From assembly GCA_965603825.1 (NCBI GenBank), contig CBFDEM010000020.1, positions 310,001 through 374,000 on the forward strand: a DNA stretch of 64,000 nucleotides. The letters are read 5' to 3'. Under the pieces are notes generated by a model that was not told the DNA's origin, made no database searches, and worked only from the letters and a program-made list of their open reading frames with translations. Origin of the DNA: Blepharisma stoltei ATCC 30299. Taxonomy: Eukaryota; Protista; Ciliophora. Below, piece by piece: positions 24,664 to 34,182 of this stretch (its first letter is position 1; every line of letters begins with the position of its first letter). The translations under genes were made by a program, and so were the position numbers.

Positions 24664-26427
24664 ATGGTCATTTTCAGAAATATGAGCATTCTCACGAAAA
24701 CCTCCCTCTCCCTTTGCGCAATTTGTGCCAGCACGATCGCCCTTTTTGAGTATTCCCATGATTACATTACGAATTTGCTCGTTCGCTCTACAAGAACATC
24801 TCTGAGGGAGCCAGAGCTTCGTGATGATGTATATATACTAATGAGAAGGCTATTGACAAGACTTCTAAATGACTCAACTACAAGAGAAAAAGCTTCTGAG
24901 TTCTTCAAGGCGGCCTTGCACTCTGAGAAGCTTGAAAATTCAACTCTGGATGTGACATTAAAGAATATGCAGACAATTGAGTACCAATCTGAAGCTTTAA
25001 ATCTGATGGTAGCCATCTCCGATCATGTATTACGTGATGAAACTTTGAAGATGAAGACCAAAAACCTGTCCTCGACTTATAAGGAAGCAGCAGCATATAT
25101 GCAAAATGTGAAAAAAATAAAAATTGGTAGAAAAAGCCAGGATATATTGAAAGCTGATTTTGAGATGCCTAAAGTCAACTTCAACGAGATGGTTAAAGAA
25201 TATTACCAGGATTATTATGCAGAGCAATTGAAAGAGCTGATCAGAAAGCAAATGAGTCAACATATTTTTAATATCCCAAAGCATGACATTCCAAGACCCA
25301 AAGAAGCAAAAACTGTTCCGATGCTTGGTGCTGTTACTGGTTTCCAAGCAATCACTAATCAACTTGGTGTAGCGTTATCATTACCGATTGAACCTGCTTT
25401 AGAAGCAATTAAATATGATAAGTATGAAATTCTAAGAATTAAGCAGGAGGAAACAAAGAATCTAGAAATTGGGCAAACTTTTGATAAGACTAAAGAAATC
25501 CAATTTGATTTGCAGCCTGAAATTTCTATCCCTCAAAAAACTGAGCAACTGAAATTTGAAGAAAGCATTCCAGCAATTCCGTTTTCAGCTGAAAAAGTAA
25601 TTCCTATTGATCAAGATACAAAGAAATTCGAAGAACAATTTGTTGCTGAAGAAGAAGTAAAAAATCATGACTTTGAAGTGGAAAAGCTTAAAAATGACGA
25701 AGTAAATATAGATGATTTTCTCGAAAAAACAAAGAATCTGATAAAAAGTGCATCATCTTTAGTCTTTGAAGCAGAAGCTCGCCCAGAAACTGAAGTGCTC
25801 AGTAAAGAAGTTTCGATTCCTTTTATAAAGAAAGAGTCCTTGAAAATAAAGAATTTGAAAATTGAAGGTCTGATTCAGAAGTTGAAGCTTGAGTCTTTAG
25901 ACTGGGGCAATGCCAAGGTTGATGAATCTTTTCATGTTGAGCTTCAGAGTCCAGAAAATGCTCAGGATCAAGAGTCATTTGTAAGAGAGCCTTTAAACAT
26001 TGATTCCTTAAAACTTGAGAGTGTACAGATCGAAGAGCCATTTCACGTTGATTTATTAGGCCCTGAAAGAAATGAGAGCCAAGAAATATCTGCTAAAAAT
26101 TCAATGGATCTCGAATCATTAAACTTAGAAAAAGCAAATATAGACGAATCATTCCATATAGATTTAATGAGTCCTGAAAGTATTGGGGAAAAAGAAGTAT
26201 CAGCTGCCCCTTTATCAGCTGATGCAAATAATTTAGCTTTTGAAAGCTTGGAAAGTGCTCTCGAATTTCACAAGAAAGAAATTCTTCAGAATTCAGAAGG
26301 CCACATTCTAGAAGCTATGAAAGAACTCACTGATGAGATTGAGAGTTTTGGATCCCCTATGAAATTTGAAAGCATTGAAAAAGATTTACTATTGGAACGC
26401 ATTGAAAGTCAACACATAAAATACTAA
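24664..26427 (+). CDS. Hypothetical protein with N-terminal hydrophobic segment and three 37-aa acidic repeats
   Basis: 587-codon ORF with no TGA; repeats ESL.....IDESFHV(D/E)L.SPE. Confidence 0.75.
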   Translation: MVIFRNMSILTKTSLSLCAICASTIALFEYSHDYITNLLVRSTRTSLREPELRDDVYILMRRLLTRLLNDSTTREKASEFFKAALHSEKLENSTLDVTLKNMQTIEYQSEALNLMVAISDHVLRDETLKMKTKNLSSTYKEAAAYMQNVKKIKIGRKSQDILKADFEMPKVNFNEMVKEYYQDYYAEQLKELIRKQMSQHIFNIPKHDIPRPKEAKTVPMLGAVTGFQAITNQLGVALSLPIEPALEAIKYDKYEILRIKQEETKNLEIGQTFDKTKEIQFDLQPEISIPQKTEQLKFEESIPAIPFSAEKVIPIDQDTKKFEEQFVAEEEVKNHDFEVEKLKNDEVNIDDFLEKTKNLIKSASSLVFEAEARPETEVLSKEVSIPFIKKESLKIKNLKIEGLIQKLKLESLDWGNAKVDESFHVELQSPENAQDQESFVREPLNIDSLKLESVQIEEPFHVDLLGPERNESQEISAKNSMDLESLNLEKANIDESFHIDLMSPESIGEKEVSAAPLSADANNLAFESLESALEFHKKEILQNSEGHILEAMKELTDEIESFGSPMKFESIEKDLLLERIESQHIKY

Positions 26428-26630
26428 AATAATCTGAATTATTAAAATATTAAATTATAAACAAATTTAATTTAAAAATACTTCATTTATTTATGTAGAT
26501 AAAAATTTAAATCTAAGTAACTATCACTCAATTGATGCAATTTTTTAAATTGCAAAATTTTAATTTTTTTAACTTGAGTATTATAATACTTTTAAATAGA
26601 TTTTTACGTCAATGCTTAAAAAACTTAAAA

Positions 26631-29060
26631 TTAAGATAAGTGTTGAGATTTGGCTGGGAGCCTCCTCAATGATCTTTTGATTTTTTTTAATTCTTCATGC
26701 GTTGGTATTTTTTCCCCTGATTCTATCATATTTATCTCTTCTGCAGAAATTTCGGTAATTTTGGCTAATTCTTCAATAGAAACTCCTTTTTCTTCTCTTT
26801 GGGCTTTAAGTGTAGCAATATTGTGTGTTAAGCTGTTGCCATTTTCCGAAACCATATCCGATGGAGAAGACATTGTTTCCAAGGCTCTTCCATTAAGTGG
26901 AGAGCTGTCTGCTAAAGGTTTTTCACGCATCGGAACTTCAGTTTCGCTTTGATTTGCTCTTCTTCTTCTCTCAAGTCTTTCTCTTCTCTCAGTGTCGCGC
27001 TTCTTCGGAGTCCTTGCAATAGTTTTGTCTAATGCCAGACTGTTCTTGCAGCACTCTTCCTGAGTCCAATAGATCATGGCTCCGATGAATCTCAGAAACA
27101 ATATTCCGACTCCAACAAAAGCTATAGCGTAAACGAACCACCTCCTACTTGTATGCCCCCCATCTTGGGAAGTTTTATCAAGAAGATTTAAATAGTAAGC
27201 AAAGGCTGAATTGCATAGGGCCCACACCATTGCCCATTTGGTTCGAAATTCTTCAAATTCTTCAACTCTTTTTTTTTCTTCTTCAGTCATTTGGTCTGGT
27301 CTGTTTCCCCAGCTGCAATCATGGATATTGCAGATTGCATATGTCAAGAACACGTTAACATATGTTGGAGTCATCAGAATAAATTGAACAGCTCCTTTGG
27401 AAACTGTGAGGGCTGCACGGTTAATCAACGATACAAACGCAAATATCGCGATTGTGGCAATCATGAATGGAAGAATTCAGTTGAAGTCAGACAAACCTTT
27501 GAAGATGTACAAGAACATCAATACTGTCGTGAATATCATAAAGACGCCATAAGCGTAAGATACTATTTTGTAAACTTCTTCAACTCTAGCAGGCTTAACT
27601 CCAAGAGATAAAAATATAACAACAATAATGACAGTTATATAGAGAACGACAAGCCAACTTCCTACTCATGCTGTATCTCCAGAAAAAAGACCTCTCATTG
27701 CAATAGCAAATGCTAAAAAGAATGTCCCAACCATAAACCATGTGAAAGCCACACTGACAGAATAATAGAACATTTGAAAAGTGAACCAGAACTTCCTGCA
27801 GCAGCTGTGATTTGAGTAATAAATTACGTCTGCTCTCCTAAGAGAGTCAATAAGAGCAAACCAAGAACCGTTAATCCACCTTCTTCTCTGCGACATTAGC
27901 ACTGATAACTTTTCGGGAACATCAGTTTCAGCTACTGATTTTTTAACGTATCTTAGCAAATAATTGCAATCCTTTTTGCTGACTAAAGCAAGGCACAGCA
28001 CTCTGTCTTCAGCTAAGTAAATGTTTGACTGAAAAGCATTCATTAAGTAGGGATGACAAATCGATTTGAAATAATCTTCCCATAAAGGCTCACCTTGCAA
28101 GGCTTCTCACCTGTAGGCACTGAAAGCTCCAGGCAACACCGTGATATATCCGATAATACTTTCCAGAGCTTTATCGAACATATGGCTGATTTTGTATTCG
28201 ACCAGCTGAGCCATCTGCACCATATTCCAGAAATTAGGATCCATAACTGTAATTTCTCCACAGCATCCAGCAATTCTCTCATCAGTCCTCATAGCTTCAT
28301 ATAGATAGAATAACGACTTCGGTAATGGTTTGGTTCCTATATCAAGAAGCATCACATACTTCGGCTGAAACATCTCACAAAACCCTCCGAAAAACCAAAG
28401 ATGAGTGTTTAGTTTTCTCTTATTTTTTTGTTTTATGCACAAAATAGTTTGTAGCCCCAGCTGGCAGTCACCAAAGTAGTGAGTTTTCATAAAGCAATGA
28501 GCGAACTCATCATCGTCAGTTTCTCCCGGGATTTTACATTTTTGCAGATCATCGCCTTCAGGCTTGAAAAAATCTTTCACTGCATTCTCATCAAAAAACT
28601 GGCTGAAAAATGGCTTTTGTTTGTTGTAAGTTTGCAAAAATGGTCTCATACCGTCAACTATAATTACCGTACAAATTTTCTCAGGCGCGATGCCAGCTAA
28701 TCTGAAATCGTCGAGATTGTCTGCGATACCGTGCATCGTGTCTGTGAAATTTTTTACGTCTTCATTGTACATAGCTACAACAATCAGGAATTCCACTTTT
28801 GTATTTTCTTCGTCATAAAGGAGGTTTTTAAAAATACTTTCACGAAATCTAGTGTCTGGGGCGATGGGTGCTAGTCCAATTGTTTCTTTAAGGTTTACAT
28901 ATTCTTTACCTTCGTGATGGTTTGTCGTCATAATTTTTAGGAGTTTAAGCGGCTGATAGACGATTGGTGAAGGTTTATCTGTCGGTTGGACGACCTCTGG
29001 CTCTTTGCTTGCTTCAATTTTTTGTAGCTGAGGTTTGCTTGCATTCTCTAATTTACTCAT
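26631..29060 (-). CDS. Chitin synthase (GT2) paralog A with C-terminal HTH
   Basis: AMYNE, KQKNKRKLNTHLWFF, LLDIGT, GCCGEI, VLPGAFSAYR-W(TGA), LAEDRVLC, AETDVP, QRRRW, HDCSWG; 809 aa. Confidence 0.95.
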
Positions 29061-29443
29061 TTTATTTATCTATAATTTTTGGAAAAGTGTGTGAAAAATG
29101 GATCTTGATATAGGCTATCAGTGGAAAATTCAAATTAATTCCAAAAAAACAATGAAGATACAAATTATATTAAAAATCAACCATTTATTAGTCGATTTAA
29201 TGGCAGAACAATTTATTAGCCCAATATTATTAAAAACTACTTTTGTCGTTATCTTAATTAAGGAAGGCTTAAAGTGTTTTATAAATTTGTGATAATATAT
29301 ATGCGAGCAGCGAAAAAAATAAGCTAGGAGGAAAGTTAACAATCTTAATTTTATAATCCATAATTTACTTACATTTTTGTAAAAATTATAGAAAATATAG
29401 ATGTATAAAAAATATATTACTTCCATTTTAGTTTTCGATATCT

Positions 29444-31783
29444 ATGTCAAAAATAATCCAATCCAGAAGCCACAAAGAAATAATAAGCTCTGCAAGCTTG
29501 AAGGCAGAAATTATCTACCAACCTTTGAAGCTGCAGAAAAAAATGATCGAAAATTTTGATGAAAAGCAATCCAAGAGGCTTGAGTGCGTGAATGGATTAG
29601 TGTGAATTGATCCAGACACAAATTTTCGTGAAAGTTTTTGTAAAGACCTAATTTACAATACACAAATTGAATTTCTCATCGTCGTTGCAATGTATAATGA
29701 ATCAAAAGAGCATCTTACCCATACGCTAAACGGTATTTCAGAAAACCTTGAAGAGTTCAAGTGCGCTGGAATCCCTCCTGAAAGAGTTTGTACAATCATC
29801 ATCGTTGATGGGATGGAGCCATTTCTAAAAACTTTCTATAAGCCTGAAGAAAAGTTCTATTTTGAGCAGTTTTTTGATGAAAAGAAAATTAAGGACTTCT
29901 TCAAAGTCGAAAATCTGCTGGACTGCAAAATTCCTGAAGAAACTGAAGACGATGAGTTTGCGCACTGTTTTATGAAAACCCATTATAATTATAAGTACAA
30001 ATATGGGATGCAAACAATCTTTTGTGTGAAGCAAAAAAACAGGAGAAAACTAAATACGCATTTATGATTCTTTGGAGGATTTTGTGAGATGTTTCAGCCA
30101 AAATATGTGATGCTTCTCGATGTTGGTACAAAACCTTTGCCTAAATCATTATTTTACCTATATGAAGCCATGGAAGAAGACGGGAGAATTGCAGGATGCT
30201 GCGGAGAAATCACTCCGATGGAGCCTAATGTTTGAAGTTTGCTTCAAATGGCTCAAATGGTCGAGTATAAAATAAGTCATATTTTTGATAAGGCACTAGA
30301 AAGTGTAATAGGATATATCACTGTCTTGCCAGGAGCTTTCAGCGCTTACCGATGGAAAGCTTTGCAAGGTGATCCCTTATGGGAATTTTACTTCAAGTCT
30401 TTTTGCCATCCTGAAAAGATGGATGCTTTTCACTCGAACATTTACCTTGCCGAAGACAGAGTTCTTTGCCTAGCCCTTGTAAGTAAAAAAAACAATGACT
30501 ATTTGTTGAGATATGTAAAAAAATCAGTTGCAGAAACTGATGTTCCTGATAAACTTTCAGTCTTAATGGCTCAAAGACGTAGATGAATAAATGGATCATG
30601 GTTTGCATTGATCGATACACTTAGGCGAGCAAGCTCCCTCTATCATTCCAATCATAGTCGGTTCAGAAAATGTCTTTTCTTTATCCAAATGGTTTATTAT
30701 GCAGTAAACGTGGCTTGCAGCTGATTTAGTGTAGGCGCTTTCTTTTTAGCGTTCAATATATCTATGAGAAACTACTTTGATGGTAATTCAGCTCCTCAGT
30801 GGATAGGCAACTTGTTCGTGTCAGTCTATGTAACAGCAATCATTCTGATTATTTTTCTATCACTTGGTGTTAAGCCCCGAAAAGCAGAAGATGTATATAA
30901 AGTGATTTCCTACTGCTATGGCTTGTTTATGGTCTTTACCATTGCAATGATGATTATTTTCCTGTATCATTCTATTCAGAATTTCAATTGGTTCCTTCCA
31001 CTCATAGTGGCTTCCTTTTTTATCTTTGGAATCACTATGATTCTTAATTGCGCAGCCCTGAAAGTTGTCAAAGGGGTGGTGCATTTTATATTACTGAGTC
31101 CAACCTATATAAATGTCTTTCTAATTTATGCTATTTGCAACTTTCATGACTGCACTTGGGGAAATAGACCTGACCAAATGACTGTAGAAGAAAAAAATAA
31201 GCTCGAAGAGTTCGAAGCCTTTCGCACACGGTGGGCTTCTGTCTGAGCCTTATGTAATTTAGCATTTGTATATTATTTGAATATTGCTGATAAAGAATCA
31301 TCCGAAAACCGTGATATGAAGTGGTTTATTTACTCAATTGGCTTCATCGGATTTGGAATCTTGGCGTTCAGATTTATTGGAGCAATGCTTTATTTAATGC
31401 AAGAGCATTTCTGCACTCGCATTATGAAGCCAAAGAGTGAAAGTGATTGGCATATTAATGAGGAAAAAGAAGAAATTGTACTGAATCATAAAGAAGCCTC
31501 TATCGTACCCTCTATTAATTATGAGAAAAAGAGATCCAGCTTAATTTCGGAAGAAAACCATTCAGAAAGGCATATGAATAGCATAGAAACGAAAGAAAAT
31601 CAAGAAATTCAGCCTGTGTACAAGTTCAAAACGATGAAAGTAGGCGCGAAAGACAATTCCCCTATTAATGGCGAGGAATATTTGAACGATATCACAACGG
31701 ATAGAGATGAAAGCGGAATTCAAAAAATAAGACGAAGAAAAACGCTTTTTGGCTTACTCGCGAAGAAAAAGTCTGATTTATAA
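29444..31783 (+). CDS. Chitin synthase (GT2) paralog B
   Basis: Same motif set; QRRR-W encoded by TGA 30584; ATG 29444 in frame; stop TAA 31781-31783. Confidence 0.95.
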
Positions 31784-31830: not shown

Positions 31831-34182
31831 TTACGACTTCCTGGTTTGCAATAAATAACCTAAAAAGGTTTTTTTACGCTGTTTAGAGCTCTGGGCAATA
31901 TCTGATTCTTTAACCTCAATATTGTCTTTGGAAACATCTATGGTGTCCGACAAATTATTATTTTTCTTTTCATGGTCAGCGACAGATATAGAGCTGTCTT
32001 TACCTGCGATATCAGATAATGGATATTTTTCTAAGTCGTGACTGTTTTCTGCACTCTTATTCAAAATATTCGTTTCAATTTCCATATCAGACCTTCTCCG
32101 ATCCTCACTCCTTTTGCTAATTCGTTCGAGTCTATTAGTTTCCCTTCTTGAAATTGCAGGTACTACACTAGGTAGGGTCTTCAGTCTTTTCTTGCAACAG
32201 AACTCTTGAATCAAATAAATTGTTGCTCCCAGAAATCTTAGCAGCATAATGATATATCCGATATATCCAACTGCATAGATAAACCATCTAGATGATGAGC
32301 CATCTGATGAAGTTTTATCTATAATATTCAAGTAATATGCAAATGCTGCATTGCATAATACCCAAATGACAGCCCATTTCGTGCGGAATTCTTCAAATTC
32401 TTCAAGCTTTTTCGTTTCTTCAGCAGTCATTTGGTCTGGCCTGCTTCCCCAGGTACAGTCGTGGATGTTGCAAATTGCATAAACAAGCAGCATATTTACA
32501 TAGGTAGGAATCATTAAAACGAAATGAACGATTCCTTTCAGAATTGTTAAAAGCGCACAGTTGAGCATAAAAATAACAATAAACATACTCACACCGCTGA
32601 GAAGTACTGGAAGGACTCAATCAAAATCTTGGAGTTTAATGAAAATGTAAATTCCGACCATTGCTACTGTATAAACCATGAATAAGCTATAGCAATATGA
32701 AATAACTTTGAAAGAATGTTCAGCTTTTCCAGGTTTTACTCCAAGAGACATAGTAAAAACTATGATTATAATAGTGACATAAGCAACAATAAGTCAGTCT
32801 CCAAGCCAAATAAAATTTGGATAATTATTAAAAAAATGCCTTACTGCGATTGCAAAGGATAAAAAAAATGTTCCAACCATAAACCACGAAAAAATGACAA
32901 TTCCTAAATAGTAAATCATTTGAAATGAAAAGAGCAGTTTTCTGCAGCAGCTGTGTTTTGATTCATAAATAGTGTTTGCTCTCCTAATAGAATCTATCAA
33001 TGCAAACCAAGAACCGTTGATTCATCTACGCCTTTGCACCATTAATGAAGAAAGCCCATCAGGGACATCTGTTTCCGCAACCGAATTTTTTACATATCGT
33101 AGAAGATAGTTACAGTCCTTTTTACTTACAAGTGCAAGACAAAGGACTCGGTCTTCAGCAAGATAAATATTTGAATGGAAAGGATCCATATCTTCGGGGT
33201 GGAAAAGAGATTTAAAATAATGTTCCCAAAGAGGATCTCCTTGCAAAGCTTCCCATCTGTAAGCACTAAAAGCTCCAGGCAATACTGTGATATAACCTAT
33301 AACACTTTCAAAAGCCTTATCAAAGATGTGAATTAGCTTATATTCTACTAATTGGGCCATCTCCACTAAATTTCAAAAATCAGGCTCCATTACTGTAATT
33401 TCTCCACAGCAGCCAGCAATTCTCGGATCAGTTTCCATTGCTTCATATAAATAAAGCAGTGATTTCCTCAGAGGTTTAGTCCCTACATCAAGCAAAACCA
33501 CATACTTGGGTTGGAACATCTCGCAAAACCCTCCAAAGAACCACAGATGAGTATTTAACTTTCTTTTATTTTCTTGCTTTACGCAAAAAATCAATTGCAG
33601 ATTATGCGGGCTATCTCCAAATGGTTCGCTTTTCATAAAGCAGTGAGCAAATTCATCATCTTCAGCTTGATTAGGTATTTTGCAGTCTAATAAATTTTCA
33701 ACCTTAAAAAAATGTTTAATTTCTTCTTCATTGAAAAATTCCTGGAAAAAGCTTTTTTGTTTACTATAAGTTTCTAAAAAGGCTTTCATTCCATCTACTA
33801 TAACAACGACACAAATTTTTTCTGGAGGAATTCCAACTTGCCGAAAATAATCTAGATTTTCAGAAATCCCATTAATAGTGTCTTTGAAGCTTTTAAGGTT
33901 TTCATTGTACATTGATACAGCGATTAAAACTTCTACTTTAGTTTTTTCGCAATATATTAGGTTTTTAAAAAAACTATCATGAAAATTTGTGTCTGGAGAA
34001 ACTCATTTCAGCCCAGAAACTTCACTGATTGCTTTATTATTTATAGTACTCATTGTTTTGAATAGAAGCATGGGCTGGTATATTAGCTCTGACGAATCAT
34101 TAGATGCTCGGTTAGAGTTTCTTTCTTTTGTCGAGGATCATCTTCTAAAGCTCGCTTGGGTTGCTTCGTTATACATAGACAT
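31831..34182 (-). CDS. Chitin synthase (GT2) paralog C
   Basis: Same motif set; QRRR-W encoded by TGA 33022-33024; ATG 34182 in frame via TGA. Confidence 0.95.

Follow-up and report, generated by a model that had tools for sequence, protein, structure and literature searches.

Chitin synthases (CHS) are known to carry accessory domains, including myosin motor, cytochrome b5, DEK_C, SAM, and MIT domains, which set the site and timing of chitin deposition. A 64-kb window of the Blepharisma stoltei genome (64,000 nucleotides of contig CBFDEM010000020.1) encodes the CHS paralogs A, B, and C, and paralog A ends in what a sequence-only reading took to be a helix-turn-helix (HTH) domain of the XRE/Cro-C1 type. 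The locus raises the question of whether a membrane-bound glycan synthase and a domain with the fold of DNA-binding repressors are truly parts of one protein, how widely such a protein occurs, and what the domain does there.

Gene structure and transcription

Paralog A is a complete, intronless coding sequence on the minus strand (26631..29060), which specifies 809 amino acids and a TAA stop when TGA is read as tryptophan, and its translation is a 100% match to the deposited protein P0269. The reading of UGA as tryptophan in B. stoltei has been reported (PMC9942806). The gene contains three in-frame TGA codons, all on the minus strand: Trp318 within AYR-W-EALQ (28107..28109), Trp465 (27666-27668), and Trp528 (27477-27479). 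Paralog B has tryptophan at the equivalent sites, all three codons align with tryptophan in paralogs or homologs, and W318 is nearly invariant among 42 homologs. Introns between the three open reading frame (ORF) pieces obtained with translation table 11 were rejected, as the apparent stops are these in-frame TGA codons. Heterotrich CHS genes are described as all single-exon, and most of them as RNA-supported (PMC10946202).

The tail peptide quoted in the sequence-only reading is the minus-strand translation of 26631-26810, with the TAA at 26633-26631. One stop-free ORF piece (26634-27476, minus strand) holds the catalytic SWGNR motif, two transmembrane (TM) helices, a basic stretch, and the HTH together. 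Because SWGNR and the HTH share this piece, the fusion needs no assumption about splicing or frame, and the in-frame fusion proposed earlier is borne out by both the ORF and the deposited protein.

The fusion is also transcribed, as seen from transcript-like contigs, whose RNA label is a guess, and from an ortholog transcript. The contigs, from runs X1-X4, are confined to 26613-29021, and neither flanking intergenic stretch has any, which serves as an internal control for the RNA nature of these runs. One of them (26616-27630) spans the HTH, the linker, the TM helices, and SWGNR without joints, and the contigs stop at 26613-26616, 15-18 nt past the stop codon. In addition, the MMETSP transcript P0113 encodes an ortholog tail that is 93 % identical.

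Catalytic body and cytosolic tail

The body of paralog A comprises a Chitin_synth_1 domain (aa 97-257; 28290..28772, minus strand; Pfam PF01644, 89 bits) and a Chitin_synth_2 region (aa 234-528; 27477..28361, minus strand; PF03142, 101 bits), and both scores exceed the cut-off. According to motifs and hydropathy, the latter region includes AEDR (aa 350), QRRRW (aa 391-395; 27876-27890, minus strand), and TM helices 1-4. The cytosolic catalytic-site motif SWGNR (aa 583-587; 27300..27314, minus strand) is followed by two more TM helices, and all three catalytic motifs are intact. The full-length AF2 model has a pLDDT of 85, and its Foldseek matches to ScChs1, PsChs1, and CaChs2 reach E values of 6e-38 to 1e-34 at 26-29 % identity; BcsA is also among the structural matches. 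By motifs and predicted structure, paralog A is a full-length, motif-intact chitin synthase of the division-1 type, for which enzyme activity is predicted.

The last TM helix (aa 640-666; 27063..27143, minus strand) has a hydropathy peak of 2.3 and corresponds to an AF2 helix at 637-670. It is followed by a juxtamembrane CCK motif and a basic helix (aa 670-705; 26946..27053, minus strand) with the sequence KKRDTERRERLERRRR and a net charge of +6, modelled as a helix at 687-705 with a pLDDT of ~60. The basic stretch had been called NLS-like, a label that does not hold as specific evidence, since paralog C carries a similar stretch and has no HTH; for the same reason it resembles the usual positive-inside segment beside a membrane helix. 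Next comes a disordered Ser/Pro-rich linker of ~35 residues (aa 707-740; 26841..26942, minus strand; pLDDT ~30 in the full-length model). RRxS motifs, for example RRASAS and RRKSRKS, are conserved in the linkers of the Stentor clade. Since two TM helices separate the HTH from the cytosolic SWGNR motif and the post-TM segment is strongly basic, we infer that the HTH lies on the cytosolic side, on this disordered tether.

The C-terminal helix-turn-helix domain

The four-helix XRE/Cro-C1-type HTH occupies aa 741-800 (26661..26840, minus strand), as identified by Pfam, AF2, Foldseek, a PDB sequence search, and the Atlas, and only the nine residues LPAKSQHLS and the TAA stop follow it (26631..26660, minus strand). 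In the full-length protein, the Pfam HTH_3 (PF01381) match covers aa 751-794 (26679-26810, minus strand) with 35.6 bits. When the last 69-70 aa were searched separately, the check that the sequence-only reading had suggested, HTH_3 scored 41.4 bits (cut-off 23; E 1.4e-10), and HTH_19, HTH_31, and HTH_25 likewise exceeded their cut-offs. The HTH_25 score is 27.1 for the isolated tail against a cut-off of 24.6, and 22.3, below the cut-off, in the full protein. AF2 places the helices at 741-758, 762-769, 773-780, and 788-800, with the fifth helix absent or short, and the pLDDT of the domain is 82 when modelled alone and 95-97 within the full-length model. The top 50 Foldseek matches in the PDB are all XRE-family structures (TM 0.62-0.75) and consist only of controller proteins, XRE repressors, and Mbf1, including C.BclI, ClgR, Mbf1, SinR, and P22 c2. 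By its profile matches and its predicted structure, the C-terminus of paralog A carries a genuine XRE/Cro-C1-fold HTH.

Within this fold, assignments to MBF1, RodZ/HTH_25, and phage/TA repressors score comparably weakly whether by Pfam and NCBIfam models, by the PDB sequence search, by hhalign, or by the Atlas, which leaves the cell's own MBF1 and a bacterial transfer as candidate sources of the domain. HTH_3 is matched by 21 of the 24 family tails at E <= 0.01, several of them under the cut-off, HTH_25 by 22/24, and aMBF1 is the NCBIfam model that most tails match (16/24). RodZ-type entries (2wus_R, 3fym, and 4gqm) are among the nearest PDB sequences, and the Mbf1 and EDF1 ribosome complexes are among the fold or sequence matches. 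With hhalign, the HTH aligns to the N-terminus of E. coli RodZ at E 1.7e-5 and weakly to B. stoltei MBF1 (E 1.5e-4, probability 52 %). RodZ is matched no more closely than generic XRE repressors, aMBF1, or HipB, and paralog A does not have the RodZ architecture, as its HTH is C-terminal and sits on a multi-TM enzyme. Pfam gave no MBF1_N match in P0269, so paralog A is not an MBF1. When only the HTH region of P0269 was used in a word-based search, a method of limited reach, the 44 candidates included none that was significant.

In the 434 and P22 repressors, a glutamine at the start of helix 2 contacts the phosphate backbone. This glutamine is present in MBF1, E. coli RodZ, and typical XRE repressors, whereas the position is I, L, or V in 24/24 members of the CHS-tail family. 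The HTH core of paralog A is acidic (pI 5.4), and its helix 3, SAEEINMIE, has a net charge of -3. Helix 3 varies across the family. Outside the lineages of winA (paralog A), P0005, and P0034, most members are strongly basic (pI 9-11.6, net +2 to +8) with an R/K-rich helix 3, for example RKYRLKIIE or xxxRLRxIE. R16 and E41 are invariant in the family alignment, and I40 and G43 nearly so. Paralog A lacks the DNA-contact signature of a helix-2 glutamine and a polar or basic helix 3, and its membership of the fold stands nevertheless because this signature is typical of binders and does not define the fold. The earlier proposal of nucleic-acid binding and a coupling to gene regulation had only the name of the fold behind it and is weakened by the acidic core, the negative helix 3, and the missing glutamine.

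Distribution and conservation

The family profile A1 has exactly five matches in the B. stoltei genome, all of them CHS tails and none elsewhere, and the HTH is carried by 5 of the ~15 CHS-like loci, whose HTH-bearing members diverge down to ~46 % core identity. Paralogs B and C of the window lack it, just as the sequence-only reading stated, and together with L008 they have other tails in its place. Two MBF1 genes (L001 and L002), which profile A1 does not detect, hold the only other XRE-type HTHs in this genome. Among the 120 best CHS homologs, 23 have the HTH, always at the extreme C-terminus. Stentor coeruleus has at least four HTH-bearing CHS (SteCoe_24170, SteCoe_10593, SteCoe_6072, and SteCoe_34212), and many environmental heterotrich-like CHS are likewise HTH-tailed. 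Further cytosolic tails and extensions of heterotrich-like CHS include a U-box placed like the HTH at the C-terminus (P0058, aa 755-819), the IQ-like tail of L008/P0004, and a CDC48_N domain at the N-terminus of P0099.

In a CHS tree from an alignment stripped of its HTH columns, the HTH-bearing rows require 4 changes versus 20.3 with shuffled labels, and the tree contains a 16-row all-HTH clade with 100 % support. In divergent pairs, the domain is also better conserved than its linker: between winA and its closest paralog, P0005, the HTH is 43 % identical and the linker 13 %, and the values for another divergent pair are 68 % and 27 %. In the paralog P0079, QRRRW, EDR, and SWG are gone and the HTH is kept. 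When a 24-tail profile was compared with 1.84 billion representatives, the best 150 matches were mostly proteins with 3-12 tandem XRE repeats, and, apart from a few short fragments (P0195, P0219, P0250, and P0253), the only family members among those 150 were P0001 and P0079; no nearest relative outside the CHS stood out. Database architecture views show the fusion in few proteins because many members fall under the Pfam cut-offs.

The fusion is not unique to paralog A; it defines an old heterotrich CHS subfamily that has had the HTH at its extreme C-terminus since before the Blepharisma-Stentor split, and it is almost certainly real and conserved. The sequence-only reading had considered that the domain might not match or fold as an HTH, might lie beyond the transcript, or might be unconstrained in relatives; instead, match and fold are present, transcript-like contigs cross the domain, and it is conserved in Stentor and other heterotrichs. 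No description of a CHS with an XRE HTH was found in the searchable literature, which agrees with the earlier view of the architecture as undescribed.

Relation to known systems

Fungal class V/VII CHS with a DEK_C domain (PF08766) resemble paralog A in that a small helical domain of DNA or chromatin type stands at the extreme cytosolic C-terminus. The role of DEK_C in these enzymes is given as 'unclear' or 'of unknown function' in reviews (PMC12653383, PMC5122149). The fold families differ, being DEK_C in the fungi and XRE/Cro-C1 in paralog A. Moreover, the fungal enzymes belong to division 2 and have a myosin motor and cytochrome b5, whereas paralog A is division-1-like and structurally nearest to ScChs1, PsChs1, and CaChs2. 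The fungal and heterotrich tails occur in separate lineages and are independent acquisitions.

The cytoplasmic XRE-type HTH of the bacterial cytoskeleton protein RodZ binds MreB (PDB 2WUS) and not DNA, and thereby couples wall synthesis to the cytoskeleton. RodZ resembles paralog A as a membrane-anchored wall-synthesis protein in which an XRE-fold HTH (HTH_25) adjoins a basic juxtamembrane segment. In contrast, its HTH is N-terminal and it has one TM helix, a periplasmic domain, and no enzyme domain, whereas the HTH of paralog A is C-terminal and follows a multi-TM synthase. As an analogy only, the RodZ parallel would concern the way of working and not family membership. To our knowledge, MBF1/EDF1, which has a similar fold, is the only widespread eukaryotic protein with an XRE-type HTH, a domain otherwise almost absent from eukaryotes. 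However, MBF1 is soluble, has an N-domain of its own, and measures ~146 aa, and its relation to the CHS-tail HTH is weak. The bacterial cellulose synthase BcsA is likewise a membrane-bound, processive GT2 enzyme that makes a polysaccharide and bears a cytosolic regulatory domain behind its final TM helix, but this C-terminal PilZ domain is a beta-barrel c-di-GMP receptor, unrelated to the HTH in sequence and in fold. SREBP, ATF6, and the plant NTLs also hold a DNA-binding-type domain on a membrane protein by a flexible cytosolic linker. They are specialized regulators that proteolysis releases at known cleavage sites and whose domains are of the bHLH, bZIP, or NAC type, whereas paralog A has an enzyme as carrier and an XRE HTH.

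Possible roles of the domain

The HTH is tentatively read as a protein-interaction or regulatory module and not as a classical operator-binding domain, with a probability of about 45 %, and this reading is favored over a cleavable DNA-binding factor. The module would recruit a cytosolic partner such as a cytoskeletal, trafficking, or activator protein, or, alternatively, it may pair with the HTH of a neighboring synthase. Such recruitment or pairing could set the place and timing of synthase activity, and phosphorylation of the linker possibly governs the module. This reading is favored because the core and helix 3 of paralog A are acidic, because no member has the phosphate-contact glutamine, because helix 3 is variable across the family, because other heterotrich-like CHS bear protein-interaction modules (U-box, IQ-like, CDC48_N), and because RodZ-type matches are among the nearest sequences. 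Against it, the basic pI of most members suits binding of nucleic acids or anionic lipids at least equally. The RodZ parallel is further weakened by a similarity no better than to generic XRE proteins and by the absence, as far as we know, of MreB from eukaryotes, including ciliates.

The very basic cores and R/K-rich helix 3 of most members would also suit a membrane-tethered nucleic-acid factor, in which cleavage of the linker frees a DNA-binding HTH to the macronucleus and ties transcription to the making of chitin or the cyst wall, along the lines of SREBP, ATF6, or the plant NTLs. DNA-binding repressors share the fold, the long disordered linker is cleavable in principle, a basic helix follows the membrane, and the retention of the HTH in the eroded P0079 suggests a catalysis-independent role. 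This explanation is nevertheless unlikely, since the winA domain is acidic with EE in helix 3, a hydrophobic residue replaces the glutamine throughout, no dimerization domain exists beyond ~60 aa, the basic stretch shared with paralog C leaves no dedicated NLS, and a genome whose only other XRE-type genes are two MBF1 genes has no tradition of XRE transcription factors. A bolder version, in which a heterotrich CHS anchors an XRE regulator and a developmental or wall-stress signal cuts off the HTH, at least in the basic versions (P0002, P0284, P0079, and the Stentor clade), so that it moves to the macronucleus or to RNA and adjusts gene expression, is a long shot. If it were true, it would be the first case in eukaryotes of a membrane-tethered transcription factor of the XRE family and would link wall synthesis directly to the genome, with P0079 as a derivative that serves purely as sensor or regulator.

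The same basic cores could instead let the HTH act in cis, docking on the cytosolic face of its own synthase or on anionic lipids and gating activity until linker phosphorylation releases it. BcsA, one of the structural matches, is a processive GT2 synthase with its PilZ domain at the equivalent place, directly behind the final TM helix, the pLDDT of the HTH rises in the full-length model, and the Stentor-clade linkers have their RRxS motifs. This is rather improbable, as the rise in pLDDT may only reflect a different alignment, anionic lipid would be no ligand for the acidic winA domain, and P0079 has no catalytic motifs and hence nothing to gate. Derivation from the cell's own MBF1, with binding to ribosomes or RNA near the membrane, could draw on the fact that, CHS tails apart, the XRE-type HTHs of the genome are those of MBF1, on the prevalence of aMBF1 matches, and on the Mbf1/EDF1 ribosome complexes among the matches. 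It is very unlikely given the weak hhalign score, the failure of profile A1 to find MBF1, the missing MBF1 N-terminal domain, and the loss of the SQ of MBF1 helix 2. A functionless relic or annotation artefact is hardly tenable and already largely refuted: the domain is small, many members are under Pfam cut-offs, and paralogs B, C, and L008 replaced it, but it is retained in five deep paralogs and in Stentor, is more conserved than the adjacent linker, keeps a constant position and its invariant or nearly invariant residues, and is transcribed.

Significance

An XRE HTH conserved across a heterotrich CHS subfamily is an unexplained and apparently undescribed architecture. Blepharisma and Stentor are tractable through RNAi by feeding, giant cells, and regeneration and encystment phenotypes, and the role of the HTH is therefore a directly testable question. 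Together, the heterotrich HTH tail and the fungal DEK_C tail represent two independent helical modules of 'DNA-binding type' on chitin synthases, which may share a logic.

Gene structure and the HTH fold

The chitin synthase (CHS) gene of paralog A, which encodes P0269, lies on the minus strand at 29060..26631 and ends with a TAA stop codon at 26633-26631. Translation table 11 splits it into three ORF pieces (28107-29060, 27666-28100, and 26631-27464), but the apparent stop codons that separate these pieces are TGA triplets in the reading frame, with tryptophan at the equivalent sites of paralog B (AYR-W-KALQG and NFN-W-FLPL). In B. stoltei, UGA encodes tryptophan, introns are tiny, and UTRs are short (PMC9942806), and an independent study describes all heterotrich CHS genes as single-exon (PMC10946202). 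With TGA as Trp, 29060..26634 is a single uninterrupted ORF of 809 codons, whose translation is identical, letter by letter, to the deposited P0269. The C-terminal peptide quoted in the sequence-only reading is the exact minus-strand translation of 26631-26810.

By its motifs, Pfam domains, and predicted fold, the carrier of the HTH is an intact enzyme. P0269 contains Chitin_synth_1 (aa 97-257) and Chitin_synth_2 (aa 234-528), the catalytic motifs AEDR, QRRRW, and SWGNR are present, and the predicted structure resembles those of ScChs1, PsChs1, and CaChs2 (E about 1e-37). The last 69-70 residues match HTH_3 at E 1.4e-10 (41.4 bits, cut-off 23), and HTH_19, HTH_31, and HTH_25 likewise exceed their cut-offs on the isolated tail; on the full protein, the HTH_3 match covers aa 751-794. 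AlphaFold2 with a 24-sequence alignment predicts a bundle of four helices with a mean pLDDT of 82, and the full-length model places helices at 741-758, 762-769, 773-780, and 788-800 with pLDDT 95-97. In Foldseek, all of the top 50 PDB matches belong to the XRE family (TM 0.62-0.75), including C.BclI, ClgR, yeast Mbf1, SinR, P22 c2, DdrO, and HipB, with weak E-values as expected at about 60 residues. A PDB-sequence profile search and the ESM Atlas are consistent with the XRE fold. The proposed XRE-type HTH at the CHS C-terminus is thus confirmed.

Expression

In four runs from one study, whose RNA nature is a guess, 73-79% of the sampled words of the P0269 gene were present. Contigs from these runs cover 26613-29021, with none in 26418-26612 or 29022-29300, and they end 15-18 nt beyond the stop codon. 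Because the contigs are bounded by the gene ends, they are transcript-like; genomic contigs would run on. A single contig (26616-27630) takes in the 3′ end, the HTH, the linker, and the TM helices and reaches past SWGNR, a second spans 26708-28228, and no joints or indels were found in contigs on this gene. The MMETSP transcriptome ORF P0113, from the 90% cluster of P0269, is 93% identical across the last 282 residues including the HTH. A convergent neighbour gene (24664..26427, plus strand) is separated from the CHS gene by about 200 bp, and its transcript-like contigs stop at 26413-26417, about 10 nt short of its TAA. The contig ends near 26413-26616 reflect either extremely short 3′ UTRs or trimmed ends.

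Family and evolution

When all six frames of the genome (41.46 Mb, 64 contigs) were searched with HTH_3, only five sites matched: three were CHS tails and the other two MBF1 genes. Reading TGA as Trp across the full set of 15 CHS-like loci uncovered a fourth HTH tail (P0005), and a fifth (P0079) came from a homolog search. The profile built from 24 tails matches exactly five places in the genome, every one a CHS tail, and does not match MBF1 there. Among the 120 best CHS homologs from 5.8 billion proteins, 23 carry the HTH, always in the last 80 or so residues. Stentor coeruleus members include SteCoe_24170, SteCoe_10593, and SteCoe_6072, found by homolog search, and SteCoe_34212, found by cluster look-up. 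The divergent member P0027 sits on a contig that is compact and eukaryotic in layout, where a CDC50 gene is interrupted by gaps of 12-36 nt, a sequence signature of heterotrich tiny introns. Many members do not exceed Pfam cut-offs, and P0009 matches no Pfam profile at all, so precomputed annotation shows the HTH in few only. Many proteins of 3-12 tandem XRE-type HTH repeats were among the representatives (P0121-P0268; e.g., P0121 with 6 repeats in 485 aa and P0128 with 12 in 2059 aa) and outscored true family members.

A CHS tree was built from 114 sequences with the HTH columns removed, leaving out fragments <600 aa, paralog C, and the full-length L011 locus. In it, the Stentor genes fall in an all-HTH clade of 16 rows (100% support). 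A B. stoltei clade (also 100%) combines P0269, P0005, P0002, and P0079, which bear the HTH, with paralog B (P0003), P0004, and P0022, which lack it, and P0027 and P0034 make up a third HTH group. The HTH label requires 4 changes, 3 of them forced by starred branches, versus 20.3 with shuffled labels. The tails also share an invariant helix-1 Arg, IE-x-G ending helix 3, a hydrophobic residue replacing the usual XRE Gln, and their extreme C-terminal position. The tree, read without a root and hence without a direction of gain or loss, and these shared quirks would together fit a single early acquisition, after which some Blepharisma paralogs replaced the tail. Paralogs B (29690-31783, plus strand) and C (31831-34100, minus strand) share a short basic-hydrophobic C-terminal motif (RRRKTLFGLLAKKK and QRKKTFLGYLLQTRK, respectively), and this motif looks like a conserved signal of another kind that took the place of the HTH.

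Topology and possible function

Downstream of SWGNR, P0269 has two TM helices, a Cys-Cys-Lys (CCK) motif with a basic helix (net +6), a linker of about 35 residues (pLDDT about 30), and the HTH. The positive-inside rule and the even TM count after the cytosolic SWGNR motif would place the HTH on the cytosolic side on a flexible tether. The CCK motif (27045-27053) follows the last TM helix in most paralogs, HTH-bearing or not, and may be an acylation site.

The HTH is most readily read as a tethered protein-interaction or oligomerisation module (probability about 0.45). The interaction modules that sister CHS have in cytosolic extensions favour a tail of interaction or regulatory type. The environmental heterotrich-like CHS P0058 has a U-box (aa 755-819) at the C-terminal position equal to that of the HTH, and P0099, another such CHS, has an N-terminal CDC48_N-like domain (aa 28-97, below cut-off). 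The P0004 tail is about 445 aa long and includes an IQ-like segment (ALMIQSWFRSWK...). Its deposited model (687 aa) begins mid catalytic domain and is probably truncated at the N-terminus; the six-frame ORF with TGA as Trp (C4:546641-549976) has at least 990 aa. Otherwise variable Stentor-clade linkers (P0006, P0012, P0017, P0011, P0026, P0018, and P0019) contain conserved RRxS motifs (RRASAS, RRKSRKS), which are sites of the basophilic-kinase type.

A tethered or cleavable nucleic-acid-binding factor, as originally envisaged, is unlikely. Gln at the helix-2 start contacts DNA phosphate in the 434 and P22 repressors and is present in MBF1, E. coli RodZ, and typical XRE repressors, whereas this residue is I, L, or V in all 24 members. 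The HTH core of P0269 is acidic (pI 5.4; helix 3 SAEEINMIE, net -3), as in P0113, P0005, and P0034, and helix 3 differs freely from clade to clade; classical operator binding is therefore disfavoured, at least in P0269. The 'NLS-like' basic stretch is not HTH-specific, since the HTH-less paralog C also has it. On the other side, most remaining members are very basic (pI 9-11.6), which leaves room in them for nucleic-acid or lipid binding. An in-cis gate or lipid binder is rated slightly below the nucleic-acid factor, and an MBF1-like RNA or ribosome binder is improbable. In divergent pairs, identity is 43 vs 13%, 68 vs 27%, 88 vs 33%, and 55 vs 21% for HTH vs linker, and the catalytic core is better conserved than the HTH. 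P0079 (C36:783184-783984) has lost QRRRW, EDR, and SWGxR with its HTH well conserved, and P0002 (C56:824411-827707) keeps the HTH and has SWEKD in place of SWGNR; both may be pseudo-enzymes retained for the function of the tail. An HTH without function is the least probable reading.

Relation to known systems

The membrane-proximal XRE HTH of RodZ binds MreB, not DNA, and RodZ is the best working analogy for the interaction module, as an analogy and not as membership. RodZ-type entries and HTH_25 are among the nearest matches, no stronger than aMBF1, HipB, SinR, and phage repressors. The nearest precedent is the C-terminal DEK_C domain of fungal class V/VII CHS, whose role is called unclear or unknown by reviews (PMC12653383, PMC5122149). 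The fusion had been put forward as possibly undescribed, and in the full-text literature searched on chitin synthase with XRE-type HTH and on Stentor and Blepharisma no description was found. The words 'HTH' and 'helix' are absent from the text of a 2024 survey of 86 ciliate CHS that includes both species (PMC10946202), and chitin is unmentioned in the B. stoltei genome paper (PMC9942806). Public databases already list HTH-bearing CHS proteins, and automatic annotation marks the HTH in some of them. CHS with accessory cytosolic domains are already known, and what appears to be new here is the HTH as an accessory domain.
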